NCBI GenBank assembly: GCA_964057225.1
Contig: OZ059896.1
Coordinates: 13,082,001-13,146,000 of the forward strand
DNA: 64,000 nt
Direction: 5' to 3'
Source of the DNA: Auanema rhodensis
Lineage: Eukaryota > Animalia > Nematoda
How positions within the stretch are numbered: position 1 is the stretch's first letter; the number at the start of each line of letters is the position of its first letter. The notes beneath the pieces are model-generated. The model saw nothing but the letters and a program-made list of their open reading frames with translations, ran no database searches and was not told the DNA's origin. Both the position numbers and the translations under genes were made by a program. Below are positions 17,701-55,439 of this stretch, piece by piece.

Positions 17701-18600
17701 GGTTACCATGAACCAATATCGATTAAAATTTGTTATTAGACTAATATGGACATGGGTAATCTAATTTTGAGAACTGCATCTATTTATCTTTCACGGGAAG
17801 CGAGTTACATACCATGTGCACATCACGTGTACAATTAATTAGCATATATTAAAGTTCACGTAAATTTCAAAGTCATGGTTACCATGCACCAATGTGAATA
17901 CAAATTTGTTATTAGACTAAAATGGACATGAGGAATCTAATTTTGAGAACCGCATCTCTTTATCTTTCACGTAAAGCGAGTTACATACCAAGTGCAAATC
18001 ACGTGTACAATTAATTAGCATAAATTAAAGTTCACGTAAATTTCAAAGTCATGGTTACCATGCACCAATATCAATAAAATTTTGTTCTTAGACTAATATG
18101 GACATGGGTAATCTAATTTTGAAAACCGCATTTCTTTATCTTTCACGGGAAGCGAGACATACCATGTGCACATCACGTGTACAATTAATTAGCATAAATT
18201 AAAGTTCACGTAAATTTCAAAGTCATGGTTACCATGCACCAATATCAATAAAACTTTGTTCTCAGACTAATATGGACATGGGTAATCTAATTTTGAAAAC
18301 CGCATCTCTTTATCTTTCACGGGAAGCGAGTCACATACCATGTGCACATCACGTGTACAATTAATTAGCATAAATTAAAGTTCACGTAAATTTCAAAGTC
18401 ATGGTTACCATGCACCAATATCGATAAAAATTTGTTCTTAGATTAATATGGACATGGGTAATCTAATTTTGAAAACCGCATTTCTTTGTCTTTCACGGGA
18501 AGCGAGTCACATACCATGTGCACATCACGTGTACAATTAATTAGCATAAATTAAAGTTCACGTAAAGTTCAAAGTCATGGTTACCATGCACCAATATCAA
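8800..18600 (+). repeat. Variable 14-17-monomer HOR block (~4 units; ends approximate)
   Basis: Diagnostic CACATCGCGTGT variant at 9404, 11861, 14842 and 17649 (spacings 2457, 2981, 2807 bp). AAAATTCGTT recurs with the same spacings. Confidence 0.8.
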
Positions 18601-33300: not shown

Positions 33301-34200
33301 TGAAAGTCATGGTTACCATGCACCAATATCGATAAAAATTTGTTCTTAGATTAATATGGACATGGGTAATCTAATTTTGAAAACCACATTTCTTTATCTT
33401 TCACGGGAAGCGAGTCACATACCATGTGCACATCACGTGTACAATTAATTAGCATAAATTAAAGTTCACGTTAATTTCAAAGTCATGGTTACCATGCACC
33501 AATATCGATAAAAATTTGTTCTTAGATTAATATGGACATGGGTAATCTAATTTTGAAAACCGCATTTCTTTATCTTTCACGGGAAGCGAGTTACATACCA
33601 TGTGCACATCACGTGTACAATTAATTAGCAAAAATTAAAGTTCACGTAAATTTCAAAGTCATGGTTACCATGTATCAATAAAAATTTGTTATTAGACTAA
33701 TATAGACATGAGGAATCTAATTTTGAAAATCGCATCTCTTTATCTTTAACGGGAAGCGAGTTACATACCATGTGCACATCACGTGTACAATTAATTAGCA
33801 TAAATTAAAGTTCACGTTAATTTCAAAGTCATGGTTACCATGCACCAATATCGATAAAAATTTGTACTTAGACTAATATGGACATGGGGAATCTAATTTT
33901 GAAAACCGCATCTCTTTATCTTTAACGGGAAGCGAGTTATATATCATGTGCACATCACGTGTACAATTAATTCGCATAAATTAAAGTTCACGTAAATTTC
34001 AAAGTCATGGTTACCATGTATCAATAAAAATTTGTTATTAGACTAATATAGACATGAGGAATCTAATTTTGAAAATCGCATCTCTTTATCTTTAACGGGA
34101 AGCGAGTTACATACCATGTGCACATCACGTGTACAATTAATTAGCATAAATTAAAGTTCACGTTAATTTCAAAGTCATGGTTACCATGCACCAATATCGA
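27400..34200 (+). repeat. 874-bp 5-mer HOR containing a 170-bp deleted monomer (interrupted; ends approximate)
   Basis: AGCAAAAATTAA variant at 28031/28905, 31359/32233 and 32755/33629. Each pair is 874 bp apart (5x176-6). Confidence 0.8.
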
Positions 34201-35953
34201 TAAAAATTTGTACTTAGACTAATATGGACATGGGGAATCTAATTTTGAAAACCGCATCTCTTTATCTTTAACGGGAAGCGAGTTATATATCATGTGCACA
34301 TCACGTGTACAATTAATTCGCATAAATTAAAGTTCACGTAAATTTCAAAGTCATGGTTACCATGCACCAATATGAATACAAATTTGTTATTAGACTAATA
34401 TGGACATGAGGAATCTAATTTTGAGAACCGCATCTCTTTTATCTTTAACGGGAAGCGAGTTACATACCATGTGCACATCACGTGTACAATTAATTAGCAT
34501 AAATTAAAGTTCACGTAAAGTTCAAAGTCATGGTTACCATGCACCAATATCAATAAAAATTTGTTCTTAGACTAATATGGACATGGGTAATCTATTTTTG
34601 AAAACCGCATCTCTTTATCTTTAACGGGAAGCGAGTTACATACCATGTGCACATCACGTGTACAATTAATTCGCATAAATTAAAGTTCACGTAAATTTCA
34701 AAGTCATGGTTACCATGCACCAATATCAATAAAACTTTGTTCTCAGACTAATATGGACATGGGTAATCTAATTTTGAGAACTGCATCTCTTTATCTTTCA
34801 CGTAAAGCGAGTTACATACCAAGTGCAAATCACGTGTACAATTAATTAGCATAAATTAAAGTTCACGTAAATTTCAAAGTCATGGTTACCATGCACCAAT
34901 ATGAATACAAATTTGTTATTAGACTAATATGGACATGAGGAATCTAATTTTGAGAACCGCATCTCTTTTATCTTTAACGGGAAGCGAGTTACATACCATG
35001 TGCAAATCACGTGTACAATTAATTAGCATAAATTAAAGTTCACGTAAATTTCAAAGTCATGGTTACCATGCACCAATATCAATAAAATTTTGTTCTTAGA
35101 CTAATATGGACATGGGTAATCTAATTTTGAAAACCGCATTTCTTTATCTTTCACGGGAAGCGAGACATACCATGTGCACATCACGTGTACAATTAATTAG
35201 CATAAATTAAAGTTCACGTAAATTTCAAAGTCATGGTTACCATGCACCAATATCAATAAAATTTTGTTCTTAGACTAATATGGACATGGGTAATCTAATT
35301 TTGAAAACCGCATTTCTTTATCTTTCACGGGAAGCGAGACATACCATGTGCACATCACGTGTACAATTAATTAGCATAAATTAAAGTTCACGTAAATTTC
35401 AAAGTCATGGTTACCATGCACCAATATCAATAAAACTTTGTTCTCAGACTAATATGGACATGGGTAATCTAATTTTGAAAACCGCATCTCTTTATCTTTC
35501 ACGGGAAGCGAGTCACATACCATGTGCACATCACGTGTACAATTAATTAGCATAAATTAAAGTTCACGTAAATTTCAAAGTCATGGTTACCATGCACCAA
35601 TATCAATAAAAATTTGTTCTTAGATTAATATGGACATGGGTAATCTAATTTTGAAAACCGCATTTCTTTGTCTTTCGCGGGAAGCGAGTCACATACCATG
35701 TGCACATCACGTGTACAATTAATTAGCATAAATTAAAGTTCACGTAAAGTTCAAAGTCATGGTTACCATGCACCAATATCAATAAAAATTTGTTCTTAGA
35801 CTAATATGGACATGGGTAATCTAATTTTGAAAACCGCATTTCTTTATCTTTCACGGGAAGCGAGTTACATACCATGTGCACATCACGTGTACAATTAATT
35901 AGCATAAATTAAAGTTCACGTTAATTTCAAAGTCATGGTTACCATGCACCAAT

Positions 35954-37068
35954 CTATTCTTGATAAGTTTACCAAGAGAATGTGAAAGTTTTTTACGACG
36001 AGATTCATCATGATGATGATAAGAACAACTGAGTTTTTTTATATGAGATGAGAGTTTTAAAATATCTCGGTCAATCTTCTTTTTTCTTCTTTCTTGTTTT
36101 TTGGGAACGCAGCTATCAATGACCGAGTGAAGAATGTGAACAAGTTTAGAGTAAGAATCTAAAGGAGTGAGACCGGAGAGATGATTAGCGAAATCAATTT
36201 TGGCTAGTCTATGATTGATGAGATTGTAGTCAGCAGCTTGAAAATTGCGATCAGAAAACATAGGTAATGCTACCGGAGACAAAGTATTAGAAGAGCTGAT
36301 TGTATTAGCTAACTGAAAAGAGTCTGAAACAATTTGGAAAACCACAGAATGGTGATCCGAGGAGCCGAGGGGGGAAGAACGGGATATGTTGTCTACACTG
36401 GATATGTTATCAGTGATAACATAATCAAGAATGTTCTTGCCTCTGGTAGGGAACTTTACCAACTGATGAGAACAGCTATCGTTGAGAAATTGAAGAATAG
36501 ATCTACTAGAGGAGCATGGTTGAGAGCAAATACCAAGGTCCCAGTTGATTTTAGGAAAATTTAGATCGCCCGTTAGGAAGAACGATCGTTTGGAAATTTG
36601 TTTACGTAGATCAGAAAGAAACGAAATGAAATCTGAATGAGAAGCTGTTGGAGGACGATAACAAAGTGAGAAAACAGCATTAAGTGAAGGTATGAGTAAG
36701 TTAATGAATTGTATAGAAGATTGAGGAGAAGAACAGGAAAGAAGAAAAGGTTTGATATGACTTTTAATATAGAGGACAACACCACCACCACGTGAGAGAC
36801 ACCTATCGGCTCTAAAAATAGTGTAAGTATCTTTACATGGGAGTAGGTGGGTATCGAACTCAGGAAAAAGCCATGATTCTGATATTGCAATTATATCAGG
36901 AGTGGATAAAGAAATAACGTGGGATAGTATATGAAGTTTGTTAAGAATAGAACGTGCATTAAAACACTGAAATGAGAGGCTGGTAGGATGTGAGACAGGG
37001 GGGGTTGAAGACGTGACAGTGTTAACGAAAGGACATTTTGTCAGACGTGAGACGTTGAGATGTATTGT
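35954..37068 (-). pseudogene. LINE ORF2 N-terminus: apurinic/apyrimidinic-like endonuclease (APE) plus linker, truncated before reverse transcriptase
   Basis: The frame of track ORF 35899..36462 stays open a further 202 codons upstream, to a TGA at 37071-37069. Manual translation: ...SFQCFNARSILNKL...PDIIAISESWL...IFRADRCLSRGGGVVLYIK...CYRPP...FLTGDLNFPKINW...QLVKFPTRGKNILDYVIT...PLGSSDHHSV. These are the canonical APE motifs (N, E, GGGV, YRPP, GD.N, D, SDH). The last ~17 aa of the track ORF are satellite read-through. Confidence 0.93.
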
Positions 37069-37201
37069 TCATGCTAACAGATCTGGTATTTTGATCTGTG
37101 GTTAATTTTGCGGATCGTGGTGGATTTTTGCGACGTCTTGGGCTAACAGAAGAACGCTTGTCTTTTGACGTGCGGTTCTGTCTTTCCTTCGACCGGCTCA
37201 T
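37022..37201 (-). CDS. 59-aa basic Arg/Ser-rich ORF between ORF1 and ORF2; probably the frameshifted C-terminus of ORF1
   Basis: ATG at 37201-37199 overlaps the ORF1 stop (ATGA). Reads MSRSKERQNRTSKDKRSSVSPRRRKNPPRSAKLTTDQNTRSVSMNNTSQRLTSDKMSFR*. One extra base in the G5 run at 37218-37222 would fuse it to ORF1. Confidence 0.5.
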   Translation of the reverse strand: MSRSKERQNRTSKDKRSSVSPRRRKNPPRSAKLTTDQNTRSVSMNNTSQRLTSDKMSFR

Positions 37202-38085
37202 TCTACCAGATTTACAAGGGGGCTAGAAAAAAGAGTTGGGGATGTGAGAGTTTGAGAATGGAGTGTTGGTAATGGAACGTTGTGAATAGATGGTATTTTA
37301 GGAGTTTGATTACAAGAAGAAGTAGGAGCTATTTGAGGGTTTGGAGGATCGGCTGGATTGCGGGAAATTTCAATAAGTCGAAGATCTCGTACCAAAAAGA
37401 CAGACTTAGTGTTGTTTTTGTTTTTTTCTTTTGCTTCCTCGCGAAGGTTGTTTTCCAGTTGAATTTCAGAAGGAAGATAGTCGCGACGTACAAAAGTTTT
37501 AGATAAAGATTCGAAACATTTAGTCTTATTTGCTTTGATAGATGTTATGATCTTATCCCGCAATTCAACCGATGGACAAGTAATAATGAGTGGGCCTGGG
37601 GATTTAGATTTAAGGATGCAACGTGTAATGGTTATTTGGTTAGTGTTAAGGAGAGTTGACAAAGTAGTGTCGTTGGATTTCTCAATGACCAGTTTCAGTA
37701 AAGAAGAAGGGTCAGAAGGTAAATCCGGGCAAGAGACTGGTACACGGAACCAGAGGGCTCTCTTACAACGATAATCGTACTTTGTCTCCTCTGATCTAAT
37801 TTTTTGGATTTGGCATGCAACATTGGAAGAAGAAAGAAGAGGTGAGTTATGGGTGGTGTTAGGAATAGTGCAAGAGAGTTGAGTTAACTTCTGCTCCAAC
37901 TTATCGAGACGCGATTTGAAATTGGTTTCGATGAGTTTTATGCGTGAGTCATGCGATGCAACTGCGGTTTTGATACTACTGAGCTCGTGTCTTATTTGTA
38001 CTGAAAGTTCAGCAAAAGAGTTATGTAAAGAATCGGAAAGTGATTCGAGGGCAGTAGTAAGAAACTCGTTAGTTACGTGAGACAT
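37198..38085 (-). CDS. LINE ORF1 protein (N-terminal coiled coil, RRM-like region, C-terminal domain)
   Basis: 295-aa ATG-initiated ORF directly upstream of the APE frame. Heptad-rich N-terminus (LSSIKTAVASHDSRIKLIETNFKSRLDKLEQKL). Motifs PGPLIITCPSVELRDKII and FVRRDYLPSEIQLENNLREEAKEKN...FLVRDLRL resemble ORF1 of invertebrate (notably nematode) CR1-type LINEs, recognised from memory. Pro/Ser/Thr-rich tail. Confidence 0.85.
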   Translation of the reverse strand: MSHVTNEFLTTALESLSDSLHNSFAELSVQIRHELSSIKTAVASHDSRIKLIETNFKSRLDKLEQKLTQLSCTIPNTTHNSPLLSSSNVACQIQKIRSEETKYDYRCKRALWFRVPVSCPDLPSDPSSLLKLVIEKSNDTTLSTLLNTNQITITRCILKSKSPGPLIITCPSVELRDKIITSIKANKTKCFESLSKTFVRRDYLPSEIQLENNLREEAKEKNKNNTKSVFLVRDLRLIEISRNPADPPNPQIAPTSSCNQTPKIPSIHNVPLPTLHSQTLTSPTLFSSPLVNLVE

Positions 38086-38256
38086 AGTTAAGTAATAGAA
38101 GGTAAAAAGAATGAAATAAGAGACAAGTAAGGAGAGAAAAAAAAAGAAGAGTTTTGGAAAAAAGAAAGATAGAAATGGGAAAAAAGAGCGTACCTTGAAA
38201 AACCAGTCCGGCGTTAGTATTAAACTGAGAGTACGAGTAGGAGCCGACCAACCAGG
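38086..38256 (-). promoter_or_regulatory. LINE 5' UTR unique part with long polypyrimidine tract
   Basis: Lies between the tandem repeats and the ORF1 ATG. The sense strand is mostly T/C over ~38090-38190. Confidence 0.65.
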
Positions 38257-38631
38257 ATGAGGTCAAATCGCGGAATGAGGTCAAATCGCGGAATGAGGTT
38301 AAATCGCGGAATGAGGTTAAATCGCGGAATGAGGTCAAATCGCGGAATGAGGTCAAATCGCGGAATGAGGTCAAATCGCGGAATGAGGTCAAATCGCGGA
38401 ATGAGGTCAAATCGCGGAATGAATCGCGGAATGAGAGGTCAAATCGCGGAATGAGAGGTCAAATCGCGGAATGAGGTCAAATCGCGGAATGAGGTCAAAT
38501 CGCGGAATGAGAGGTCAAATCGCGGAATGAGAGGTCAAATCGGGGAATGAGGTCAAATCGCGGAATGAGAGGTCAAATCGCGGAATATGAGGTCAAATCG
38601 CGGAATGAGGTCAAATCGCGGAATGAGAGGT
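38257..38631 (-). repeat. 18-20-bp minisatellite (ATGAGGTCAAATCGCGGA on +), ~20 copies, at the 5' end of the LINE
   Basis: Units start at 38257, 38275, 38293 and so on. Variants have +GA or +AT (20 bp), one 12-bp deleted unit (38419), GGTTAAAT and TCGGGGA. Confidence 0.97.
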
Positions 38632-39166
38632 GACACGTGATGTGCACATGGTATGTAACTCGCTTCCCGTTAAAGATAAAGAGATGCGGTTTTCAAAATT
38701 AGATTACCCATGTCCATATTAGTCTAAGAACAAATTTTCATTGATATTGGTGCATGGTAACCATGACTTTGAAATTTACGTGAACTTTAATTTATGCTAA
38801 TTAATTGCACACGTGATGTGCACATGGTATGTAACTCGCTTCCCGTTAAAGATAAAGAGATGCGGTTCTCAAAATTAGTTTACCCATGTTCATATTAGTC
38901 TGAGAACAAATTTTTATTGATATTGGTTCATGGTAACCATGACTTTGAAATTTACGTGAACTTTAATTTATGCTAATTAATTGTACACGTGATGTGCACA
39001 TGGTATGTAACTCGCTTCCCGTTAAAGATAAAGAGATGCGGTTTTCAAAATTAGATTACCCATGTCCATATTAGTCTAAGTACAAATTTTTATTGATATT
39101 GGTTCATGGTAACCATGACTTTGAAATTTACGTGAACTTTAATTTATGCTAATTAATTGTACACGT

Positions 39167-39337
39167 TTGAACGGGTTTATTGTTCGAATCACAGGTTATA
39201 ATCGGAAAACAAGGCTAATAAATCGGGAAAATTGCAGATATTCAAAAGAACCTTACAATACAAACATACTTGTAATAATTGACTAAATATATGTACAAGA
39301 AACAGGTTCAGCATATTTCCTTTTACAATGATATAAA
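39167..39337 (-). mobile_element. 171-bp insert copy 1 (probable 5'-truncated LINE 3' UTR), ACGT TSD
   Basis: TGTAC-ACGT|TTGAACGGGTTTATTG...GATATAAA|ACGT-GATGTG. The - strand is T-rich and ends AATAAA-CCCGTTCAA. Private variant AAGGCTAATA. Confidence 0.75.
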
Positions 39338-42300
39338 ACGTGATGTGCACATGGTATGTAACTCGCTTCCCGTGAAAGAGAAAGAAATGCGGTTCTCCAA
39401 ATTAGATTCCTCATGTCCATTTTAGTCTAATAAGAAATTTTTATTGATATTGGTGCATGGTAACCATGACTTTGAAATTTACGTGAACTTTAATTTATGC
39501 TAATTAATTGTACACGTGATGTGCACATGGTATGTAACTCGCTTCCCGTGAGAGATAAAGAGATTCAGTTCTCGAAATTAGATTACCCATGTCCATATTA
39601 GTCTAAGTACAAAGTTTTATTGATATTGGTGCATGGTAACCATGACTTTGGAATTTACGTGAACTTTAATTTATGCTAATTAATTGTACACGTGATGTGC
39701 ACATGGTATGTAACTCGCTTCCCGTGAGAGATAAAGAGATTCAGTTCTCGAAATTAGATTCCTCATGTCCATTTTAGTCTAATAACAAATTTTTATTGAT
39801 ACATGGTAACCATGACTTTGAAATTAACGTGAATTTTAATTTATGCTAATTAATTGTACACGTGATGTGCACATGGTATGTAACTCGCTTCCCGTGAGAG
39901 ATAAAGAGATTCAGTTCTCGAAATTAGATTACCCATGTCCATATTAGTCTAAGAACAAATTTTCATTGATATTGGTGCATGGTAACCATGACTTTGAAAT
40001 TTACGTGAACTTTAATTTATGCTAATTAAATGTACACGTAATGTGCACATGGTATGTAACTCGCTTCCCGTGAAAGATAAAAGAAATGCGGTTCTCAAAA
40101 TCAGATTCCTCATGTCCATTTTAGTCTAATAACAAATTTTTATTGATACATGGTAACCATGACTTTGAAATTAACGTGAACTTTAATTTATGCTAATTAA
40201 TTGTACACGTGATGTGCACATGGTATGTAACTCGCTTCCCGTTAAAGATAAAGAGATGCGGTTCTCAAAATTAGTTTACCCATGTTCATATTAGTCTGAG
40301 AACAAATTTTTATTGATATTGGTGCATGGTAATATGACTTTGAAATTTACGTGAACTTTAATTTATGCTAATTAATTGTACACGTAATGTGCACATGGTA
40401 TGTAACTCGCTTCCCGTGAAGGATATAGAAATGCGGTTTTCAAAATTAGATTCCTCATGTCCATATTAGTCTAAGAAGAAATTTTAATCGATATTGGTTC
40501 ATGGTAACCATGACTTTGAATTTTACGTGAACTTTAATTTATGCTAATTAATTGTACACGTGATGTGCACATGGTATGTAACTCGCTTCCCGTTAAAGAT
40601 AAAGAGATGCGGTTTTCAAAATTAGATTCCTCATGTCCATATTAGTCTAAGAACAAATTTTAATCGATATTGGTTCATGGTAACCATGACTTTGAAATTT
40701 ACGTGAACTTTAATTTATGCTAATTAATTGTACACGTGATGTGCACATGGTATGTAACTCGCTTCCCGTGAGAGATAAAGAGATTCAGTTCTCGAAATTA
40801 GATTACCCATGTCCATATTAGTCTAAGTACAAAGTTTTATTGATATTGGTGCATGGTAACCATGACTTTGAAATTTACGTGAACTTTAATTTATGCTAAT
40901 TAATTGTACACGTGATGTGCACATGGTATGTAACTCGCTTCCCGTTAAAGATAAAGAGATGCGGTTTTCAAAATTAGATTACCCATGTCCATATTAGTCT
41001 GAAAACAAATTTTTATTGATATTGGTTCATGGTAACCATGACTTTGAAATTTACGTGAACTTTAATTCATGCTAATTAATTGTACACGTGATGTGCACAT
41101 GGTATGTAACTCGCTTCCCGTTAAAGATAAAGAGATGCGGTTTTCAAAATTAGATTACCCATGTCCATATTAGTCTAAGAACAAATTTTCATTGATATTG
41201 GTGCATGGTAACCATGACTTTGAATTTTACGTGAACTTTAATTTATGCTAATTAATTGCACACGTGATGTGCACATGGTATGTAACTCGCTTCCCGTTAA
41301 AGATAAAGAGATGCGGTTCTCAAAATTAGTTTACCCATGTTCATATTAGTCTGAGAACAAATTTTTATTGATATTGGTTCATGGTAACCATGACTTTGAA
41401 ATTTACGTGAACTTTAATTCATGCTAATTAATTGTACACGTGATGTGCACATGGTATGTAACTCGCTTCCCGTGAAAGATAAAAGAAATGCGGTTCTCAA
41501 AATCAGATTCCTCATGTCCATTTTAGTCTAATAACAAATTTTTATTGATACATGGTAACCATGACTTTGAAATTAACGTGAACTTTAATTTATGCTAATT
41601 AATTGTACACGTGATGTGCACATGGTATGTAACTCGCTTCCCGTTAAAGATAAAGAGATGCGGTTTTCAAAATTAGATTACCCATGTCCATATTAGTGTG
41701 AGAACAAAGTTTTATTGATATTGGTGCATGGTAATATGACTTTGAAATTTACGTGAACTTTAATTTATGCTAATTAATTGTACATGTAATGTGCACATGG
41801 TATGTAACTCGCTTCCCGTGAAGGATATAGAAATGCGGTTTTCAAAATTAGATTCCTCATGTCCATATTAGTCTAAGAACAAATTTTAATCGATATTGGT
41901 TCATGGTAACCATGACTTTGAATTTTACGTGAACTTTAATTTATGCTAATTAATTGTACACGTGATGTGCACATGGTATGTAACTCGCTTCCCGTTAAAG
42001 ATAAAGAGATGCGGTTTTCAAAATTAGATTACCCATGTCCATATTAGTCTGAAAACAAATTTTTATTGATATTGGTTCATGGTAACCATGACTTTGAAAT
42101 TTACGTGAACTTTAATTCATGCTAATTAATTGTACACGTGATGTGCACATGGTATGTAACTCGCTTCCCGTTAAAGATAAAGAGATGCGGTTCTCAAAAT
42201 TAGTTTACCCATGTTCATATTAGTCTAAGAACAAATTTTAATCGATATTGGTTCATGGTAACCATGACTTTGAAATTTACGTGAACTTTAATTTATGCTA

Positions 42301-45300
42301 ATTAATTGCACACGTGATGTGCACATGGTATGTAACTCGCTTCCCGTGAGAGATAAAGAGATTCAGTTCTCGAAATTAGATTACCCATGTCCATATTAGT
42401 CTAATTACAAAGTTTTATTGATATTGGTGCATGGTAACCATGACTTTGAAATTTACGTGAACTTTAATTTATGCTAATTAATTGTACACGTGATGTGCAC
42501 ATGGTATGTAACTCGCTTCCCGTTAAAGATAAAGAGATGCGGTTTTCAAAATTAGATTCCTCATGTCCATATTAGTCTAAGAACAAATTTTAATCGATAT
42601 TGGTTCATGGTAACCATGACTTTGAATTTTACGTGAACTTTAATTTATGCTAATTAATTGTACACGTGATGTGCACATGGTATGTAACTCGCTTCCCGTT
42701 AAAGATAAAGAGATGCGGTTTTCAAAATTAGATTCCTCATGTCCATATTAGTCTAAGAACAAATTTTAATCGATATTGGTTCATGGTAACCATGACTTTG
42801 AAATTTACGTGAACTTTAATTTATGCTAATTAATTGTACACGTGATGTGCACATGGTATGTAACTCGCTTCCCGTTAAAGATAAAGAGATGCGGTTTTCA
42901 AAATTAGATTCCTCATGTCCATATTAGTCTAAGAACAAATTTTAATCGATATTGGTTCATGGTAACCATGACTTTGAAATTTACGTGAACTTTAATTTAT
43001 GCTAATTAATTGTACACGTGATGTGCACATGGTATGTAACTCGCTTCTCGTGAGAGATAAAGAGATTCAGTTCTCGAAATTAGATTCCTCATGTCCATTT
43101 TAGTCTAATAACAAATTTTTATTGATACATGGTAACCATGACTTTGAAATTAACGTGAATTTTAATTTATGCTAATTAATTGTACACGTGATGTGCACAT
43201 GGTATGTAACTCGCTTCCCGTTAAAGATAAAGAGATGCGGTTCTCAAAATTAGTTTACCCATGTTCATATTAGTCTGAGAACAAATTTTTATTGATATTG
43301 GTGCATGGTAATATGACTTTGAAATTTACGTGAACTTTAATTTATGCTAATTAATTGTACACGTAATGTGCACATGGTATGTAACTCGCTTCCCGTGAAG
43401 GATATAGAAATGCGGTTTTCAAAATTAGATTCCTCATGTCCATATTAGTCTAAGAACAAATTTTAATCGATATTGGTTCATGGTAACCATGACTTTGAAT
43501 TTTACGTGAACTTTAATTTATGCTAATTAATTGTACACGTGATGTGCACATGGTATGTAACTCGCTTCCCGTTAAAGATAAAGAGATGCGGTTTTCAAAA
43601 TTAGATTCCTCATGTCCATATTAGTCTAAGAACAAATTTTAATCGATATTGGTTCATGGTAACCATGACTTTGAAATTTACGTGAACTTTAATTTATGCT
43701 AATTAATTGTACACGTGATGTGCACATGGTATGTAACTCGCTTCCCGTGAGAGATAAAGAGATTCAGTTCTCGAAATTAGATTACCCATGTCCATATTAG
43801 TCTAAGTACAAAGTTTTATTGATATTGGTGCATGGTAACCATGACTTTGAAATTTACGTGAACTTTAATTTATGCTAATTAATTGTACACGTGATGTGCA
43901 CATGGTATGTAACTCGCTTCCCGTTAAAGATAAAGAGATGCGGTTTTCAAAATTAGATTACCCATGTCCATATTAGTCTGAAAACAAATTTTTATTGATA
44001 TTGGTTCATGGTAACCATGACTTTGAAATTTACGTGAACTTTAATTCATGCTAATTAATTGTACACGTGATGTGCACATGGTATGTAACTCGCTTCCCGT
44101 TAAAGATAAAGAGATGCGGTTTTCAAAATTAGATTACCCATGTCCATATTAGTCTAAGAACAAATTTTCATTGATATTGGTGCATGGTAACCATGACTTT
44201 GAATTTTACGTGAACTTTAATTTATGCTAATTAATTGCACACGTGATGTGCACATGGTATGTAACTCGCTTCCCGTTAAAGATAAAGAGATGCGGTTCTC
44301 AAAATTAGTTTACCCATGTTCATATTAGTCTGAGAACAAATTTTTATTGATATTGGTTCATGGTAACCATGACTTTGAAATTTACGTGAACTTTAATTCA
44401 TGCTAATTAATTGTACACGTGATGTGCACATGGTATGTAACTCGCTTCCCGTTAAAGATAAAGAGATGCGGTTTTCAAAATTAGATTACCCATGTCCATA
44501 TTAGTCTAAGAACAAATTTTAATCGATATTGGTTCATGGTAACCATGACTTTGAAATTTACGTGAACTTTAATTTATGCTAATTAAATGTACACGTAATG
44601 TGCACATGGTATGTAACTCGCTTCCCGTGAAAGATAAAAGAAATGCGGTTCTCAAAATCAGATTCCTCATGTCCATTTTAGTCTAATAACAAATTTTTAT
44701 TGATACATGGTAACCATGACTTTGAAATTAACGTGAACTTTAATTTATGCTAATTAATTGTACACGTGATGTGCACATGGTATGTAACTCGCTTCCCGTT
44801 AAAGATAAAGAGATGCGGTTTTCAAAATTAGATTACCCATGTCCATATTAGTGTGAGAACAAAGTTTTATTGATATTGGTGCATGGTAATATGACTTTGA
44901 AATTTACGTGAACTTTAATTTATGCTAATTAATTGTACATGTAATGTGCACATGGTATGTAACTCGCTTCCCGTGAAGGATATAGAAATGCGGTTTTCAA
45001 AATTAGATTCCTCATGTCCATATTAGTCTAAGAACAAATTTTAATCGATATTGGTTCATGGTAACCATGACTTTGAATTTTACGTGAACTTTAATTTATG
45101 CTAATTAATTGTACACGTGATGTGCACATGGTATGTAACTCGCTTCCCGTTAAAGATAAAGAGATGCGGTTTTCAAAATTAGATTACCCATGTCCATATT
45201 AGTCTGAAAACAAATTTTTATTGATATTGGTTCATGGTAACCATGACTTTGAAATTTACGTGAACTTTAATTCATGCTAATTAATTGTACACGTGATGTG

Positions 45301-47576
45301 CACATGGTATGTAACTCGCTTCCCGTTAAAGATAAAGAGATGCGGTTCTCAAAATTAGTTTACCCATGTTCATATTAGTCTAAGAACAAATTTTAATCGA
45401 TATTGGTTCATGGTAACCATGACTTTGAAATTTACGTGAACTTTAATTTATGCTAATTAATTGCACACGTGATGTGCACATGGTATGTAACTCGCTTCCC
45501 GTGAGAGATAAAGAGATTCAGTTCTCGAAATTAGATTACCCATGTCCATATTAGTCTAATTACAAAGTTTTATTGATATTGGTGCATGGTAACCATGACT
45601 TTGAAATTTACGTGAACTTTAATTTATGCTAATTAATTGTACACGTGATGTGCACATGGTATGTAACTCGCTTCCCGTTAAAGATAAAGAGATGCGGTTT
45701 TCAAAATTAGATTCCTCATGTCCATATTAGTCTAAGAACAAATTTTAATCGATATTGGTTCATGGTAACCATGACTTTGAAATTTACGTGAACTTTAATT
45801 TATGCTAATTAATTGTACACGTGATGTGCACATGGTATGTAACTCGCTTCCCGTTAAAGATAAAGAGATGCGGTTTTCAAAATTAGATTCCTCATGTCCA
45901 TATTAGTCTAAGAACAAATTTTAATCGATATTGGTTCATGGTAACCATGACTTTGAAATTTACGTGAACTTTAATTCATGCTAATTAATTGTACACGTGA
46001 TGTGCACATGGTATGTAACTCGCTTCCCGTGAGAGATAAAGAGATTCAGTTCTCGAAATTAGATTACCCATGTCCATATTAGTCTAATTACAAAGTTTTA
46101 TTGATATTGGTGCATGGTAACCATGACTTTGAAATTTACGTGAACTTTAATTTATGCTAATTAATTGTACACGTGATGTGCACATGGTATGTAACTCGCT
46201 TCCCGTTAAAGATAAAGAGATGCGGTTTTCAAAATTAGATTCCTCATGTCCATATTAGTCTAAGAACAAATTTTAATCGATATTGGTTCATGGTAACCAT
46301 GACTTTGAAATTTACGTGAACTTTAATTTATGCTAATTAATTGTACACGTGATGTGCACATGGTATGTAACTCGCTTCCCGTTAAAGATAAAGAGATGCG
46401 GTTTTCAAAATTAGATTCCTCATGTCCATATTAGTCTAAGAACAAATTTTAATCGATATTGGTTCATGGTAACCATGACTTTGAAATTTACGTGAACTTT
46501 AATTTATGCTAATTAATTGTACACGTGATGTGCACATGGTATGTAACTCGCTTCTCGTGAGAGATAAAGAGATTCAGTTCTCGAAATTAGATTCCTCATG
46601 TCCATTTTAGTCTAATAACAAATTTTTATTGATACATGGTAACCATGACTTTGAAATTAACGTGAATTTTAATTTATGCTAATTAATTGTACACGTGATG
46701 TGCACATGGTATGTAACTCGCTTCCCGTTAAAGATAAAGAGATGCGGTTTTCAAAATTAGATTACCCATGTCCATATTAGTCTGAAAACAAAGTTTTATT
46801 GATATTGGTGCATGGTAACCATGACTTTGAAATTTACGTGAACTTTAATTTATGCTAATTAATTGTACACGTGATGTGCACATGGTATGTAACTCGCTTC
46901 CCGTTAAAGATAAAGAGATGCGGTTTTCAAAATTAGATTACCCATGTCCATATTAGTCTGAAAACAAATTTTTATTGATATTGGTTCATGGTAACCATGA
47001 CTTTGAAATTTACGTGAACTTTAATTCATGCTAATTAATTGTACACGTGATGTGCACATGGTATGTAACTCGCTTCCCGTTAAAGATAAAGAGATGCGGT
47101 TTTCAAAATTAGATTACCCATGTCCATATTAGTCTAAGAACAAATTTTCATTGATATTGGTGCATGGTAACCATGACTTTGAAATTTACGTGAACTTTAA
47201 TTTATGCTAATTAATTGCACACGTGATGTGCACATGGTATGTAACTCGCTTCCCGTTAAAGATAAAGAGATGCGGTTCTCAAAATTAGTTTACCCATGTT
47301 CATATTAGTCTGAGAACAAATTTTTATTGATATTGGTTCATGGTAACCATGACTTTGAAATTTACGTGAACTTTAATTTATGCTAATTAATTGTACACGT
47401 GATGTGCACATGGTATGTAACTCGCTTCCCGTTAAAGATAAAGAGATGCGGTTTTCAAAATTAGATTACCCATGTCCATATTAGTCTAAGTACAAATTTT
47501 TATTGATATTGGTTCATGGTAACCATGACTTTGAAATTTACGTGAACTTTAATTTATGCTAATTAATTGTACACGT

Positions 47577-47747
47577 TTGAACGGGTTTATTGTTCGAATC
47601 ACAGGTTATAATCGGAAAACAAGGTTAATAAATCGGGAAAATTGCAGATATTCAAAAGAACCTTACAATACAAACATACTTGTAATAATTGACTAAATAT
47701 ATGTACAAGAAACAGGTTCAGCATATTTCCTTTTACAATGATATAAA
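47577..47747 (-). mobile_element. 171-bp insert copy 2
   Basis: Same sequence and ACGT flanks as copy 1. Confidence 0.75.
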
Positions 47748-48455
47748 ACGTGATGTGCACATGGTATGTAACTCGCTTCCCGTGAAAGAGAAAGAAATGC
47801 GGTTCTCCAAATTAGATTACCCATGTCCATATTAGTCTAAGAACAAATTTTCATTGATATTGGTGCATGGTAACCATGACTTTGAAATTTACGTGAACTT
47901 TAATTCATGCTAATTAATTGTACACGTGATGTGCACATGGTATGTAACTCGCTTCCCGTTAAAGATAAAGAGATGCGGTTTTCAAAATTAGATTACCCAT
48001 GTCCATATTAGTCTAAGAACAAATTTTCATTGATATTGGTGCATGGTAACCATGACTTTGAAATTTACGTGAACTTTAATTTATGCTAATTAATTGCACA
48101 CGTGATGTGCACATGGTATGTAACTCGCTTCCCGTTAAAGATAAAGAGATGCGGTTCTCAAAATTAGTTTACCCATGTTCATATTAGTCTGAGAACAAAT
48201 TTTTATTGATATTGGTTCATGGTAACCATGACTTTGAAATTTACGTGAACTTTAATTTATGCTAATTAATTGTACACGTGATGTGCACATGGTATGTAAC
48301 TCGCTTCCCTTGAGAGATAAAGAGATTCAGTTCTCGAAATTAGATTACCCATGTCCATATTAGTCTAAGTACAAAGTTTTATTGATATTGGTGCATGGTA
48401 ACCATGACTTTGGAATTTACGTGAACTTTAATTTATGCTAATTAATTGTACACGT

Positions 48456-48626
48456 TTGAACGGGTTTATTGTTCGAATCACAGGTTATAATCGGAAAACA
48501 AGGTTAATAAATCGGGAAAATTGCAGATATTCAAAAGAACCTTACAATACAAACATACTTGTAAAAATTGACTAAATATATGTACAAGAAACAGGTTCAG
48601 CATATTTCCTTTTACAATGATATAAA
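48456..48626 (-). mobile_element. 171-bp insert copy 3
   Basis: Same junctions; private variant GTAAAAATTG. Confidence 0.75.
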
Positions 48627-51251
48627 ACGTGATGTGCACATGGTATGTAACTCGCTTCCCGTGAAAGATAAAGAAATGCGGTTTTCAAAATTAGATTCCT
48701 CATGTCCATTTTAGTCTAATAACAAATTTTTATTGATACATGGTAACCATGACTTTGAAATTAACGTGAATTTTAATTTATGCTAATTAATTGTACACGT
48801 GATGTGCACATGGTATGTAACTCGCTTCCCGTTAAAGATAAAGAGATGCGGTTTTCAAAATTAGATTACCCATGTCCATATTAGTCTGAAAACAAATTTT
48901 TATTGATATTGGTTCATGGTAACCATGACTTTGAAATTTACGTGAACTTTAATTCATGCTAATTAATTGTACACGTGATGTGCACATGGTATGTAACTCG
49001 CTTCCCGTTAAAGATAAAGAGATGCGGTTTTCAAAATTAGATTACCCATGTCCATATTAGTCTGAAAACAAATTTTTATTGATATTGGTTCATGGTAACC
49101 ATGACTTTGAAATTTACGTGAACTTTAATTTATGCTAATTAAATGTACACGTAATGTGCACATGGTATGTAACTCGCTTCCCGTGAAGGATATAGAAATG
49201 CGGTTTTCAAAATTAGATTCCTCTTGTCCATTTTAGTCTAATAACAAATTTTTATTGATACATGGTAACCATGACTTTGAAATTAACGTGAACTTTAATT
49301 TATGCTAATTAATTGTACACGTGATGTGCACATGGTATGTAACTCGCTTCCCGTTAAAGATAAAGAGATGCGGTTTTCAAAATTAGATTACCCATGTCCA
49401 TATTAGTGTGAGAACAAAGTTTTATTGATATTGGTGCATGGTAATATGACTTTGAAATTTACGTGAACTTTAATTTATGCTAATTAATTGTACACCTAAT
49501 GTGCACATGGTATGTAACTCGCTTCCCGTGAAGGATATAGAAATGCGGTTTTCAAAATTAGATTCCTCTTGTCCATATTAGTCTAAGAACAAATTTTAAT
49601 CGATATTGGTTCATGGTAACCATGACTTTGAATTTTACGTGAACTTTAATTTATGCTAATTAATTGTACACGTGATGTGCACATGGTATGTAACTCGCTT
49701 CCCGTTAAAGATAAAGAGATGCGGTTTTCAAAATTAGATTCCTCATGTCCATATTAGTCTAAGAACAAATTTTAATCGATATTGGTTCATGGTAACCATG
49801 ACTTTGAAATTAACGTGAATTTTAATTTATGCTAATTAATTGTACACGTGATGTGCACATGGTATGTAACTCGCTTCCCGTGAGAGATAAAGAGATTCAG
49901 TTCTCGAAATTAGATTACCCATGTCCATATTAGTCTAAGTACAAAGTTTTATTGATATTGGTGCATGGTAACCATGACTTTGAAATTTACGTGAACTTTA
50001 ATTTATGCTAATTAATTGTACACGTGATGTGCACATGGTATGTAACTCGCTTCCCGTTAAAGATAAAGAGATGCGGTTTTCAAAATTAGATTACCCATGT
50101 CCATATTAGTCTGAAATCAAATTTTTATTGATATTGGTTCATGGTAACCATGACTTTGAAATTTACGTGAACTTTAATTCATGCTAATTAATTGTACACG
50201 TGATGTGCACATGGTATGTAACTCGCTTCCCGTTAAAGATAAAGAGATGCGGTTTTCAAAATTAGATTCCTCATGTCCATATTAGTCTAAGAACAAATTT
50301 TAATCGATATTGGTTCATGGTAACCATGACTTTGAAATTTACGTGAACTTTAATTTATGCTAATTAATTGTACACGTGATGTGCACATGGTATGTAACTC
50401 GCTTCCCGTGAGAGATAAAGAGATTCAGTTCTCGAAATTAGATTCCTCATGTCCATTTTAGTCTAATAACAAATTTTTATTGATACATGGTAACCATGAC
50501 TTTGAAATTAACGTGAATTTTAATTTATGCTAATTAATTGTACACGTGATGTGCACATGGTATGTAACTCGCTTCCCGTGAGAGATAAAGAGATTCAGTT
50601 CTCGAAATTAGATTACCCATGTCCATATTAGTCTGAAAACAAATTTTTATTGATATTGGTTCATGGTAACCATGACTTTGAAATTTACGTGAACTTTAAT
50701 TTATGCTAATAAATTGTACACGTGATGTGCACATGGTATGTAACTCGCTTCCCGTTAAAGATAAAGAGATGCGGTTTTCAAAATTAGATTACCCATGTCC
50801 ATATTAGTCTGAAAACAAATTTTTATTGATATTGGTTCATGGTAACCATGACTTTGAAATTTACGTGAACTTTAATTCATGCTAATTAATTGTACACGTG
50901 ATGTGCACATGGTATGTAACTCGCTTCCCGTTAAAGATAAAGAGATGCGGTTTTCAAAATTAGATTACCCATGTCCATATTAGTCTAAGAACAAATTTTC
51001 ATTGATATTGGTGCATGGTAACCATGACTTTGAAATTTACGTGAACTTTAATTTATGCTAATTAATTGTACACGTGATGTGCACATGGTATGTAACTCGC
51101 TTCCCGTCAAAGATAAAGAGATGCGGTTTTCAAAATTAGATTACCCATGTCCATATTAGTCTAAGTACAAATTTTTATTGATATTGGTTCATGGTAACCA
51201 TGACTTTGAAATTTACGTGAACTTTAATTTATGCTAATTAATTGTACACGT

Positions 51252-51422
51252 TTGAACGGGTTTATTGTTCGAATCACAGGTTATAATCGGAAAACAAGGT
51301 TAATAAATCGGGAAAATTGCAGATATTCAAAAGAACCTTACAATACAAACATACTTGTAATAATTGACTAAATATATGTACAAGAAACAGGTTCAGCATA
51401 TTTCCTTTTACAATGATATAAA
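51252..51422 (-). mobile_element. 171-bp insert copy 4
   Basis: Same sequence and junctions. Confidence 0.75.
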
Positions 51423-51778
51423 ACGTGATGTGCACATGGTATGTAACTCGCTTCCCGTGAAAGAGAAAGAAATGCGGTTCTCCAAATTAGATTCCTCATG
51501 TCCATTTTAGTCTAATAAGAAATTTTTATTGATATTGGTGCATGGTAACCATGACTTTGAAATTTACGTGAACTTTAATTTATGCTAATTAATTGTACAC
51601 GTGATGTGCACATGGTATGTAACTCGCTTCCCGTGAGAGATAAAGAGATTCAGTTCTCGAAATTAGATTACCCATGTCCATATTAGTCTAAGTACAAAGT
51701 TTTATTGATATTGGTGCATGGTAACCATGACTTTGGAATTTACGTGAACTTTAATTTATGCTAATTAATTGTACACGT

Positions 51779-51949
51779 TTGAACGGGTTTATTGTTCGAA
51801 TCACAGGTTATAATCGGAAAACAAGGTTAATAAATCGGGAAAATTGCAGATATTCAAAAGAACCTTACAATACAAACATACTTGTAATAATTGACTAAAT
51901 ATATGTACAAGAAACAGGTTCAGCATATTTCCTTTTACAATGATATAAA
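51779..51949 (-). mobile_element. 171-bp insert copy 5
   Basis: Same sequence and junctions; 527 bp after copy 4. Confidence 0.75.
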
Positions 51950-53349
51950 ACGTGATGTGCACATGGTATGTAACTCGCTTCCCGTGAAAGATAAAGAAAT
52001 GCGGTTTTCAAAATTAGATTCCTCATGTCCATTTTAGTCTAATAACAAATTTTTATTGATACATGGTAACCATGACTTTGAAATTAACGTGAATTTTAAT
52101 TTATGCTAATTAATTGTACACGTGATGTGCACATGGTATGTAACTCGCTTCCCGTTAAAGATAAAGAGATGCGGTTTTCAAAATTAGATTCCTCATGTCC
52201 ATATTAGTCTAAGAACAAATTTTAATCAATATTGGTTCATGGTAACCATGACTTTGAAATTTACGTGAACTTTAATTTATGCTAATTAATTGTACACGTG
52301 ATGTGCACATGGTATGTAACTCGCTTCCCGTGAGAGATAAAGAGATTCAGTTCTCGAAATTAGATTCCTCATGTCCATTTTAGTCTAATAACAAATTTTT
52401 ATTGATACATGGTAACCATGACTTTGAAATTAACGGGAATTTTAATTTATGCTAATTAATTGTACACGTGATGTGCACATGGTATGTAACTCGCTTCCCG
52501 TGAGAGATAAAGAGATTCAGTTCTCGAAATTAGATTACCCATGTCCATATTAGTCTAAGTACAAAGTTTTATTGATATTGGTGCATGGTAACCATGACTT
52601 TGAAATTTACGTGAACTTTAATTTATGCTAATAAATTGTACACGTGATGTGCACATGGTATGTAACTCGCTTCCCGTTAAAGATAAAGAGATGCGGTTTT
52701 CAAAATTAGATTACCCATGTCCATATTAGTCTGAAAACAAATTTTTATTGATATTGGTTCATGGTAACCATGACTTTGAAATTTACGTGAACTTTAATTC
52801 ATGCTAATTAATTGTACACGTGATGTGCACATGGTATGTAACTCGCTTCCCGTTAAAGATAAAGAGATGCGGTTTTCAAAATTAGATTACCCATGTCCAT
52901 ATTAGTCTAAGAACAAATTTTCATTGATATTGGTGCATGGTAACCATGACTTTGAAATTTACGTGAACTTTAATTTATGCTAATTAATTGCACACGTGAT
53001 GTGCACATGGTATGTAACTCGCTTCCCGTTAAAGATAAAGAGATGCGGTTCTCAAAATTAGTTTACCCATGTTCATATTAGTCTGAGAACAAATTCTTAT
53101 TGATATTGGTTCATGGTAACCATGACTTTGAAATTTACGTGAACTTTAATTTATGCTAATTAATTGTACACGTGATGTGCACATGGTATGTAACTCGCTT
53201 CCCGTTAAAGATAAAGAGATGCGGTTTTCAAAATTAGATTACCCATGTCCATATTAGTCTAAGTACAAATTTTTATTGATATTGGTTCATGGTAACCATG
53301 ACTTTGAAATTTACGTGAACTTTAATTTATGCTAATTAATTGTACACGT

Positions 53350-53520
53350 TTGAACGGGTTTATTGTTCGAATCACAGGTTATAATCGGAAAACAAGGTTA
53401 ATAAATCGGGAAAATTGCAGATATTCAAAAGAACCTTACAATACAAACATACTTGTAATAATTGACTAAATATATGTACAAGAAACAGGTTCAGCATATT
53501 TCCTTTTACAATGATATAAA
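53350..53520 (-). mobile_element. 171-bp insert copy 6
   Basis: Same sequence and junctions. Confidence 0.75.
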
Positions 53521-53876
53521 ACGTGATGTGCACATGGTATGTAACTCGCTTCCCGTGAAAGAGAAAGAAATGCGGTTCTCCAAATTAGATTCCTCATGTC
53601 CATTTTAGTCTAATAAGAAATTTTTATTGATATTGGTGCATGGTAACCATGACTTTGAAATTTACGTGAACTTTAATTTATGCTAATTAATTGTACACGT
53701 GATGTGCACATGGTATGTAACTCGCTTCCCGTGAGAGATAAAGAGATTCAGTTCTCGAAATTAGATTACCCATGTCCATATTAGTCTAAGTACAAAGTTT
53801 TATTGATATTGGTGCATGGTAACCATGACTTTGGAATTTACGTGAACTTTAATTTATGCTAATTAATTGTACACGT

Positions 53877-54047
53877 TTGAACGGGTTTATTGTTCGAATC
53901 ACAGGTTATAATCGGAAAACAAGGTTAATAAATCGGGAAAATTGCAGATATTCAAAAGAACCTTACAATACAAACATACTTGTAATAATTGACTAAATAT
54001 ATGTACAAGAAACAGGTTCAGCATATTTCCTTTTACAATGATATAAA
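53877..54047 (-). mobile_element. 171-bp insert copy 7
   Basis: Same sequence and junctions; 527 bp after copy 6. Confidence 0.75.
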
Positions 54048-54403
54048 ACGTGATGTGCACATGGTATGTAACTCGCTTCCCGTGAAAGAGAAAGAAATGC
54101 GGTTCTCCAAATTAGATTCCTCATGTCCATTTTAGTCTAATAAGAAATTTTTATTGATATTGGTGCATGGTAACCATGACTTTGAAATTTACGTGAACTT
54201 TAATTTATGCTAATTAATTGTACACGTGATGTGCACATGGTATGTAACTCGCTTCCCGTGAGAGATAAAGAGATTCAGTTCTCGAAATTAGATTACCCAT
54301 GTCCATATTAGTCTAAGTACAAAGTTTTATTGATATTGGTGCATGGTAACCATGACTTTGGAATTTACGTGAACTTTAATTTATGCTAATTAATTGTACA
54401 CGT

Positions 54404-54574
54404 TTGAACGGGTTTATTGTTCGAATCACAGGTTATAATCGGAAAACAAGGTTAATAAATCGGGAAAATTGCAGATATTCAAATGAACCTTACAATACAA
54501 ACATACTTGTAATAATTGACTAAATATATGTACAAGAAACAGGTTCAGCATATTTCCTTTTACAATGATATAAA
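54404..54574 (-). mobile_element. 171-bp insert copy 8
   Basis: Same junctions; private variant TTCAAATGAACC; 527 bp after copy 7. Confidence 0.75.
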
Positions 54575-55439
54575 ACGTGATGTGCACATGGTATGTAACT
54601 CGCTTCCCGTGAAAGATAAAGAAATGCGGTTTTCAAAATTAGATTCCTCATGTCCATTTTAGTCTAATAACAAATTTTTATTGATACATGGTAACCATGA
54701 CTTTGAAATTAACGTGAATTTTAATTTATGCTAATTAATTGTACACGTGATGTGCACATGGTATGTAACTCGCTACCCGTTAAAGATAAAGAGATGCGGT
54801 TTTCAAAATTAGATTACCCATGTCCATATTAGTCTGAAAACAAATTTTTATTGATATTGGTTCATGGTAACCATGACTTTGAAATTTACGTGAACTTTAA
54901 TTCATGCTAATTAATTGTACACGTGATGTGCACATGGTATGTAACTCGCTTCCCGTTAAAGATAAAGAGATGCGGTTTTCAAAATTAGATTCCTCATGTC
55001 CATATTAGTCTAAGAACAAATTTTTATTGATATTGGTTCATGGTAACCATGACTTTGAAATTTACGTGAACTTTAATTTATGCTAATTAAATGTACACGT
55101 AATGTGCACATGGTATGTAACTCGCTTCCCGTGAAAGATAAAGAAATGCGGTTCTCAAAATTAGTTTACCCATGTGCATATTAGTCTGAGAACAAATTTT
55201 TATTGATACATGGTAACCATGACTTTGAAATTAACGTGAACTTTAATTTATGCTAATTAATTGTACACGTGATGTGCACATGGTATGTAACTCGCTTCCC
55301 GTTAAAGATAAAGAGATGCGGTTTTCAAAATTAGATTACCCATGTCCATATTAGTGTGAGAACAAAGTTTTATTGATATTGGTGCATGGTAACCATGACT
55401 TTGAACTTTAATTTAACTTAACTTTAATTTATGCTAATT

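Follow-up and report, generated by a model that had tools for sequence, protein, structure and literature searches.

A foreign fragment of near-monomer length in a satellite array

Does a satellite array select the length of the units that it amplifies? The window (the whole stretch of 64,000 nucleotides that was analysed) raises this question with a foreign insert of 171 bp which, together with a 4-bp ACGT target-site duplication (TSD), adds 175 bp to an array of 176-bp monomers. If the array accepted only register-keeping units, the locus would provide direct sequence evidence for selection on length or chromatin spacing instead of sequence, and whether satellites are selected on length or on sequence is a long-open question. 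The 176-bp monomer lies within the nucleosomal range, as in nucleosome-length satellites, which is where the idea behind the original prediction came from. The satellite is probably part of the DNA eliminated from Auanema rhodense somatic cells (matching preprint 10.64898/2026.08.27.747507). The features of the window are as follows; for the insert copies, minus denotes the LINE sense strand, which is the minus strand of the window.

1..35953, minus strand: left satellite arm, same satellite in opposite orientation
35954..38632, minus strand: 5′ part of a LINE from the parent family, at 99% identity to the 4.68-kb copy found in L044
38633..64000, plus strand: right satellite arm, 176-bp monomer, host to eight insert copies
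39163-39166 and 39338-39341: ACGT flanking insert copy 1
39167..39337, minus strand: insert copy 1, with 167 nt of LINE 3′ tail at 39167-39333 and four extra nucleotides at 39334-39337
47577..47747, minus strand: insert copy 2, monomer context C*Q
48456..48626, minus strand: insert copy 3, monomer context E*R, R being a 170-bp D/F chimera
51252..51422, minus strand: insert copy 4, context C*D, opening the first copy of a 2098-bp duplicated block
51779..51949, minus strand: insert copy 5, context E*R, 527 bp beyond copy 4
53350..53520, minus strand: insert copy 6, context C*D, 2098 bp beyond copy 4
53877..54047, minus strand: insert copy 7, context E*D, 527 bp beyond copy 6
54404..54574, minus strand: insert copy 8, context E*R, 527 bp beyond copy 7, its second ACGT ending at 54578

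The insert-free monomers of the right arm comprise 109 of 176 bp, 10 of 170 bp, three of 171 bp, five of 175 bp and one of 181 bp. The 19 of 128 monomers that depart from 176 bp recur as shared variants, and one 6-bp deletion is common to the 170- and 171-bp monomers. The length of 176 bp given for the monomer in the original prediction is therefore the main one (109 of 128) but not a strict one, as variants range from 170 to 181 bp. Near 55.1 kb the monomer types change, and the insert-bearing domain of this arm ends there.

An exact-word search of the window returned eight insert matches of 171 bp each, all on the plus strand. Their ends were identical in all eight copies when compared with 30 nt of flank per side, and each copy differed from the majority sequence by zero or one substitution. 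The distance between phase anchors across each window insert was 351 bp (176 + 175), and both this distance and the junctions agree with the predicted sum of 171 bp plus a 4-bp ACGT TSD, close to 176 bp. The predicted lack of visible similarity to the monomer was borne out as well: the local alignment score of insert against monomer was 15 (shuffle mean 15.3), and blastn-short gave matches no longer than 7-nt words. The eight copies with identical ends and about one substitution each hold for the window, but the genome-wide total is 10. The two additional copies lie beyond the window to its left, at C4:13064299 and C4:13066052, in the arm of opposite orientation, and one of them adds 174 bp; the part of the left arm within the window (1..35953) contains zero copies. 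All 10 are confined to C4:13.064-13.137 Mb (73 kb, one array complex) and have the same 5′ junction, including the four extra nucleotides.

Origin of the insert

By sequence comparison, the insert is a heavily 5′-truncated copy of a LINE, a non-LTR retrotransposon that is specific for one site of the satellite. In line with the predicted truncation, positions 1–167 of the insert match the tails of longer copies at 95–97% identity, and every other genomic match runs beyond insert position 167 into the longer element, with the same ACACGT junction start. In a genome pattern scan, 45 of 45 LINE 3′ junctions were located directly after ACACGT in the 176-bp satellite, and a reversed pattern used as the control gave 0 matches. 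Inserts of 140, 171, 199, 775, 1040, 1579, 1619, 3934, 4154 and 4682 bp share one 3′ junction, and the 5′ ends in the LINE family vary from 35 to 4682 nt. The 4-bp ACGT was present on both sides in nine of 11 measured events, with a small target deletion in the other two. The 3′ end of the LINE reads ...CCCGTTCAA and has no poly-A.

The 4.68-kb copy of the LINE encodes RVT_1 (E 5e-34), and the central copy of the window encodes Exo_endo_phos_2 (E 8.5e-10). The LINE at 35954..38632 carries an 18-mer tandem array at its 5′ end, ORF1 and an APE endonuclease domain, and breaks off at the satellite strand switch. Among solved structures, LINE-1 ORF2p gave the best relatives, and these PDB matches reflect general similarity of LINE reverse transcriptases only. 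The parent LINE had inserted into arrays of six or more large contigs (C1, C3-C7).

Added length and copy number

The original prediction explained the near-match of 175 and 176 bp by a constraint, under which foreign units are kept or amplified only if they preserve a nucleosome-sized register of 176 bp and selection acts on length, not on sequence. The 10 copies reached by the insert adding 175 bp are in favor of this reading, as is a second, single-copy insertion of 1583 bp (9 × 176 − 1). Both events (two of 11) lie exactly 1 bp under a multiple of 176, and the probability that at least two of 11 fall within ±1 is 0.014 when the discovery case is included. Without the discovery case, however, one of 10 events differs from a multiple of 176 by 1 bp at most (P = 0.16), and at least one of 11 events would be expected there with a probability of 0.17. 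Across the 11 measured events, the residues mod 176 appear to be evenly distributed (Rayleigh p = 0.78), and the in-register 1583-bp insert stayed single.

Amplification was not restricted to units in register. C7 has another truncation product of the same LINE, which adds 203 bp (176 + 27) and is present in 16 copies. After subtraction of 203, the spacing is a whole multiple of 176 in all 11 successive intervals of one arm; the blocks align over 1.2–5.6 kb at ~99% identity, compared to 81% for adjacent monomers there, and the flanking monomers show no compensating change. Because this fragment of the same LINE was copied more often elsewhere, the match of 175 to 176 bp looks coincidental. Inserts adding 779, 3938 and 4594 bp are present in two copies each. 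With residues mod 176 of +27 (203), +75 (779), +66 (3938) and +18 (4594), four amplified events fall outside the register and account for 22 copies, against 10 for the fifth, which keeps it. The insert length itself drifts, to 174 bp in one left-arm copy and to 184 versus 203 bp on C7. Native monomers also vary in length, and those of 170, 171, 175 and 181 bp were amplified too; therefore, there is no long-range grid of 176 bp.

The claim that the array tolerates or amplifies only units in the 176-bp register does not survive the 16 copies of the 203-bp insert, a unit that also argues against foreign units having to keep a nucleosomal length. The original prediction had named the equal amplification of inserts of arbitrary length as the observation that would speak against it, and units of 203, 779, 3938 and 4594 bp were found multiplied; by this measure, the strong form of the constraint is refuted. 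The census that it suggested, of added length mod 176 versus copy number, was run in part and within this genome, and its uniform residues argue against the length idea as well. Taken together, we consider it very unlikely that length governs which units are kept or amplified.

The census consists of 11 measured events and leaves out at least seven insertions of >1.66 kb; main-family insertions outside it are located at C1:331875, C1:5105887, C3:23992741, C4:454061, C6:426454, C97:50193 and C94:496. The copy numbers come from a single satellite assembly, and part of the events were located through junction coordinates from pattern scans. Most events escaped a strict 5′-junction pattern; the 4594-bp pair and a probable 4724-bp event came from two less strict ones, and a 14-nt junction pattern performed no better than its control. 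Two sets of candidates were rejected. A pair on C1 with an apparent 6863 bp (39 × 176 − 1) proved to be plain satellite with point variants, its 3′ junction reading like a 1-nt monomer insertion, and ‘ATGT’ junctions were set aside as monomers with a 1-bp deletion.

Fragments about one monomer long were multiplied to 10 copies (175 bp) and 16 copies (203 bp), against a maximum of two for longer inserts. As the two most amplified inserts are both of this size, a soft preference for short units is possible. Recombination, or the chromatin of a germline-restricted satellite, might favor inserts that let flanking monomers pair in phase; we regard such a soft effect of register or size as very unlikely.

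Spread of the insert by recombination

The arrangement of the copies shows how they arose: all stem, as far as their shared junctions and flanks tell, from one insertion spread by array recombination (unequal crossing-over), because they form a 527-bp tandem unit and a 2098-bp duplication, adjoin chimeric monomers and carry a common flank haplotype linked to the insert. This part of the original prediction was upheld, the shared 5′ junction included. Written as monomer types, the array contains a tandem of [insert-D-E] of 527 bp plus the 2098-bp duplication. Copy spacings of 527 and 879 bp equal 175 bp plus two and four monomers, respectively, and the remaining spacings in the window fit once the 170-bp monomers are included. 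The flanks of the copies are identical across 356–534 nt, and the monomers adjoining the insert are chimeric (R of D and F, Q of D and an L-like type). All eight monomers after the insert begin with the first 52 nt of D with zero or one mismatch, and across 38.6-55.1 kb the monomers without an insert all have three or more mismatches to these 52 nt. With spacings of whole monomers plus insert, flanks closer to each other than neighboring monomers are, and crossover chimeras, the unit is an ordinary composite satellite unit. What remains of value is a clean, datable case of unequal crossing-over spreading a foreign fragment through an array, with visible crossover chimeras and transfer between arms of opposite orientation.

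The copies could instead be separate site-specific insertions of a SINE-like element, the 171-nt tail being a short non-autonomous RNA copied in trans. Such insertions would yield the same junctions and the same duplications in each copy, and the fragment is the extreme 3′ tail of the LINE, the part that reverse transcriptases of such LINEs usually recognise. However, the copies are not dispersed over many arrays with independent flanks: 10 of 10 lie in a single array within 73 kb, although arrays on at least six large contigs contain the parent LINE, and the copies are arranged in tandem blocks of 527 and 2098 bp. The 52 nt after every copy share one haplotype that is absent from the insert-free monomers of the domain, with chimeras farther out, and the tail RNA has no special predicted stability (z 0.09). 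Re-insertion of this kind is highly improbable. There is likewise very little probability that mis-assembly of the satellite multiplied one real insert into several apparent copies: long near-identical arrays assemble poorly and the 3938-bp insertion is present on two small unplaced contigs (C95 and C101) with identical junctions, but the insert copies occur in four different flank contexts and carry substitutions of their own, the flanks of the two copies in the opposite arm have diverged, and the matching paper reports a build from PacBio HiFi reads (10.64898/2026.08.27.747507).

The locus is very probably explained by one truncated LINE insertion and its passive spread with the monomers, the near-match of 175 and 176 bp being a coincidence. 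By analogy to established target-primed reverse transcription, the LINE would nick a monomer after ACACGT, within the palindrome CACGTG, and reverse transcription would be primed on the LINE 3′ end. Synthesis would halt after 167 nt, four extra nucleotides would join at the 5′ junction and the 4-bp ACGT duplication would close the insertion, adding 175 bp in total. The fragment was then carried passively by unequal crossing-over and block duplication among flanking monomers, and exchange between the two arms of opposite orientation also moved it, giving 10 copies in one array complex on C4. As the register of exchange would be fixed by the homology of satellite monomers, not by the length lying between, the near-match of 175 to 176 bp is most likely a coincidence among many truncated insertions.

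Relation to known satellite units and LINEs

Composite satellite units have been described elsewhere; the 500-bp repeat of Arabidopsis is proposed to have arisen when a foreign insert was combined with a portion of the 180-bp pAL1 repeat (review PMC8122249). As in such units, a non-satellite fragment sits here at a fixed place and was multiplied with the monomers by recombination, at spacings of k monomers plus insert. Unlike them, copy numbers are low (10 and 16) and the unit has not overrun the array, and the donor LINE is identified, with long copies still present. The insert also resembles ordinary 5′-truncated (dead on arrival) LINE copies in sharing its 3′ end with copies whose 5′ ends vary, and in its TSD and the extra nucleotides at its 5′ junction, but it was amplified by the host array instead of being left single.

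The site-specific LINE is more notable biology than the composite unit, and it supplies natural tags for tracing array dynamics. Target-specific LINEs of the APE type are represented in insects by R1, in rDNA, and by TRAS/SART, in telomeric repeats. By its features, the LINE described here resembles these, with 3′ junctions at one nucleotide of a tandem repeat, and it appears to share with them a short fixed duplication, variable 5′ truncation and the lack of a poly-A tail. Its target, in contrast to theirs, is a 176-bp satellite of a nematode.

Insert copies in the satellite arms

A single 176-bp satellite fills the window (G000:C4:13082001–13146000; C4 is this contig in the assembly G000, 180.9 Mb in total) as two arms, as resolved by Tandem Repeats Finder. 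The arms are separated by 2.7 kb of non-satellite sequence, with mirror-image GC and AT skews on either side of the window centre. In the germline assembly of Auanema rhodense, ~61% of the genome, chiefly large tandem-repeat blocks, is lost from somatic cells (bioRxiv 10.64898/2026.08.27.747507).

Satellite arms and insert copies (window positions)
1–35953, one orientation: left arm of the 176-bp satellite
38633–64000, opposite orientation to the left arm: right arm of the 176-bp satellite
39167, 47577, 48456, 51252, 51779, 53350, 53877 and 54404, + strand: starts of insert copies (exact-word search)

The original prediction described eight nearly identical copies of a foreign 171-bp insert that, with an ACGT duplication, lengthens the array by 175 bp. 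Exact words from the insert were found eight times, all on the + strand; extended by 30 nt to the left and right, all eight copies had identical ends, and each carried at most one substitution relative to the majority sequence. The duplicated ACGT lies at 39163–39166 and again directly after the insert, and the phase-anchor distance across each insert is 351, so 175 bp is added. The insert bears no similarity to the monomer, as predicted (local score 15 versus 15.3 ± 2.4 for shuffles). The count of eight holds within the window but not genome-wide, where a 5′-junction pattern scan gave exactly ten copies. The two extra copies (C4:13064299 and C4:13066052), in an opposite-orientation arm left of the window, have the same site and relative orientation as those in the window, and one adds 174 bp.

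The satellite monomer is itself variable in length, correcting a strict 176-bp picture. Right-arm monomers measured 176 bp (n = 109), 170 bp (n = 10), 171 bp (n = 3), 175 bp (n = 5) and 181 bp (n = 1). The 170- and 171-bp monomers have one 6-bp deletion in common and the 175-bp monomers one 1-bp deletion, so these variants were amplified too. Another satellite strand switch, from + to −, lies 1.6 kb past the window end (L041:1565–1566; C4:13147565), at a junction without inserted sequence.

Origin of the insert from a site-specific LINE

A whole-genome search with the insert as query returned ~30 further matches, each beginning at insert position 1 immediately after ACACGT in the 176-bp satellite. 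Most do not stop at position 167 but continue as a longer element, of which the insert is accordingly the end piece, read on the opposite strand. This bears out its proposed origin as a LINE fragment: 167 nt of the insert match the tail of an element with reverse transcriptase and endonuclease domains, and the remaining 4 nt are extra nucleotides at the 5′ junction, the whole being bounded on both sides by ACGT. The longest measured parent copy (4,682 bp, locus L044) carries an 18-nt repeat array at its 5′ end, a 354-aa ORF1 and a 753-aa ORF with a reverse transcriptase domain (RVT_1, E = 5e-34). The central 2.7 kb of the window matches the 5′ 2.4 kb of this copy at 99% identity and includes an APE-type endonuclease domain in open frame (Exo_endo_phos_2, E = 8.5e-10; Exo_endo_phos, E = 2.9e-6); among solved proteins, LINE-1 ORF2p is the closest. 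The element ends in ...CCCGTTCAA without a poly-A tail, and a 3′-junction pattern scan found 45 sites, with 0 for the control pattern. The parent element is thus an APE-type LINE with a single insertion nucleotide in the satellite. ACGT was duplicated in nine of 11 measured events of differing length, and the other two showed small target deletions. Given the palindrome CACGTG and the 4-bp duplication, the two strands are probably nicked symmetrically, each after CACGT.

The strand switch within the window (35954–38632) coincides with a parent-family copy that keeps the 5′ 18-mer array, ORF1 and endonuclease domain and is broken off within ORF2 at the start of the left arm; its APE-domain frame has no ATG, GTG or TTG ahead of the domain. 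A 6.2-kb LINE left of the window (L039:7367 to L040:3578; C4:13075367–13081578), ~65% identical to the parent family, occupies a different monomer position with a 6-bp AAATTA duplication, and has a 5′ tandem array of its own and a tail end like that of the parent family. On another contig, ~55 monomers (G000:C6:16604377–16727531) carry TT in place of AC just 5′ of ACGTGATG; as judged from coordinates, these were rejected as insertions and represent a local satellite subvariant, with spacings that are multiples of 176.

Probable spread of one insertion by recombination

Monomers of the right arm, delimited at the insertion site, were assigned to lettered types at ≤2 edits. With the insert written as an asterisk, four contexts were found: C*D, C*Q, E*R and E*D. 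Insert, D and E form a tandem run with a period of 527 bp, and two inserts are carried in a 2,098-bp duplication. Monomer R (170 bp), which follows three copies, starts like D and is identical to F from approximately position 57, while the first 67 nt of Q are identical to D and the remainder is L-like. R and Q are the hybrids expected of unequal crossovers within the insert-adjoining monomer. The first 52 nt of D were matched with zero or one mismatch in all eight monomers after an insert; every insert-free monomer between 38.6 and 55.1 kb had at least three. The flanks of the copy at 39167 are identical to those of copies 8–14 kb distant over 534 nt on the left and 356 nt on the right, and all ten copies are confined to 73 kb. 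The repeated units, hybrid monomers, tied haplotype, identical flanks and confinement support one insertion spread by array recombination, as originally proposed. The same confinement, together with the hybrids and single flank haplotype beside the insert, argues against a SINE-like tail RNA that re-inserted many times; folding of the tail RNA predicted no unusual stability (z = 0.09).

The right arm comprises two domains that differ in monomer types (38633–55100 and 55100–64000). The insert-adjoining haplotype at the start of D is closer to the distal domain (one mismatch) than to the domain in which the copies now lie.

Insert length and satellite register

The near match of 175 to 176 bp had been read as a length constraint on the array, and a plot of insert length (mod 176) against copy number had been proposed as a check. 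We ran it as a census of 11 measured events of the parent family, defined from sequence and junction coordinates, with copy numbers counted in one assembly; at least seven insertions of >1.66 kb and ~25 junctions of other tail variants lie outside it.

Measured insertion events (added length, copies, residue mod 176)
175 bp, 10 copies, −1
203 bp, 16 copies, +27
144 bp, 1 copy, −32
779 bp, 2 copies, +75
1,036 bp, 1 copy, −20
1,583 bp, 1 copy, −1
1,623 bp, 1 copy, +39
3,938 bp, 2 copies, +66
4,158 bp, 1 copy, −66
4,594 bp, 2 copies, +18
4,678 bp, 1 copy, −74

Of the five amplified events only one keeps the register, with 10 copies; the other four lie outside it and carry 22. The residues of all 11 events are evenly spread around the circle (Rayleigh p = 0.78). 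At least one of 11 events would land no more than 1 bp from a multiple of 176 by chance with P = 0.17; with the prompting case removed, one of ten does so, the unamplified 1,583-bp insert (P = 0.16). Counting both in-register cases gives a post hoc P = 0.014, the basis of a residual soft-register reading.

The 203-bp event on contig C7 is decisive against the length idea.

16 copies of the 203-bp unit, L031–L037 (G000:C7:478001–634000), to either side of another strand switch, L035:4001–4004

The unit holds the final 35 nt of the LINE tail, whose end-proximal 20-nt segment is present as nine repeats. The copies differ by zero or one substitution, and one variant, 94 nt from the strand switch, is 19 bp shorter. 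All 11 intervals along one arm leave a whole multiple of 176 once 203 is subtracted; the 27-bp shift is therefore uncompensated. Neighbouring insert-bearing blocks align without gaps over 1.2–5.6 kb at ~99% identity, against only 81% for adjacent monomers. The insert's length as a sign of register constraint is thus not supported; the array amplifies whatever sits between recombining monomers. The feature is a fresh instance of a known arrangement, a transposon fragment within a composite satellite unit, and is chiefly of use as a marker of array dynamics.

Four AGA|ACGTGATG junctions at G000:C4:2668341–2672761, spaced by 1,351, 1,703 and 1,351 bp (each 119 mod 176), look like another amplified out-of-register interruption, as judged from the coordinates of one junction side. 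The 1,583-bp event is a single-copy truncated insertion of 1,579 bp in locus L020 (C4:23237498–23239076); the 1,583 bp it adds equal 9 × 176 − 1, a residue shared with the 175-bp unit.
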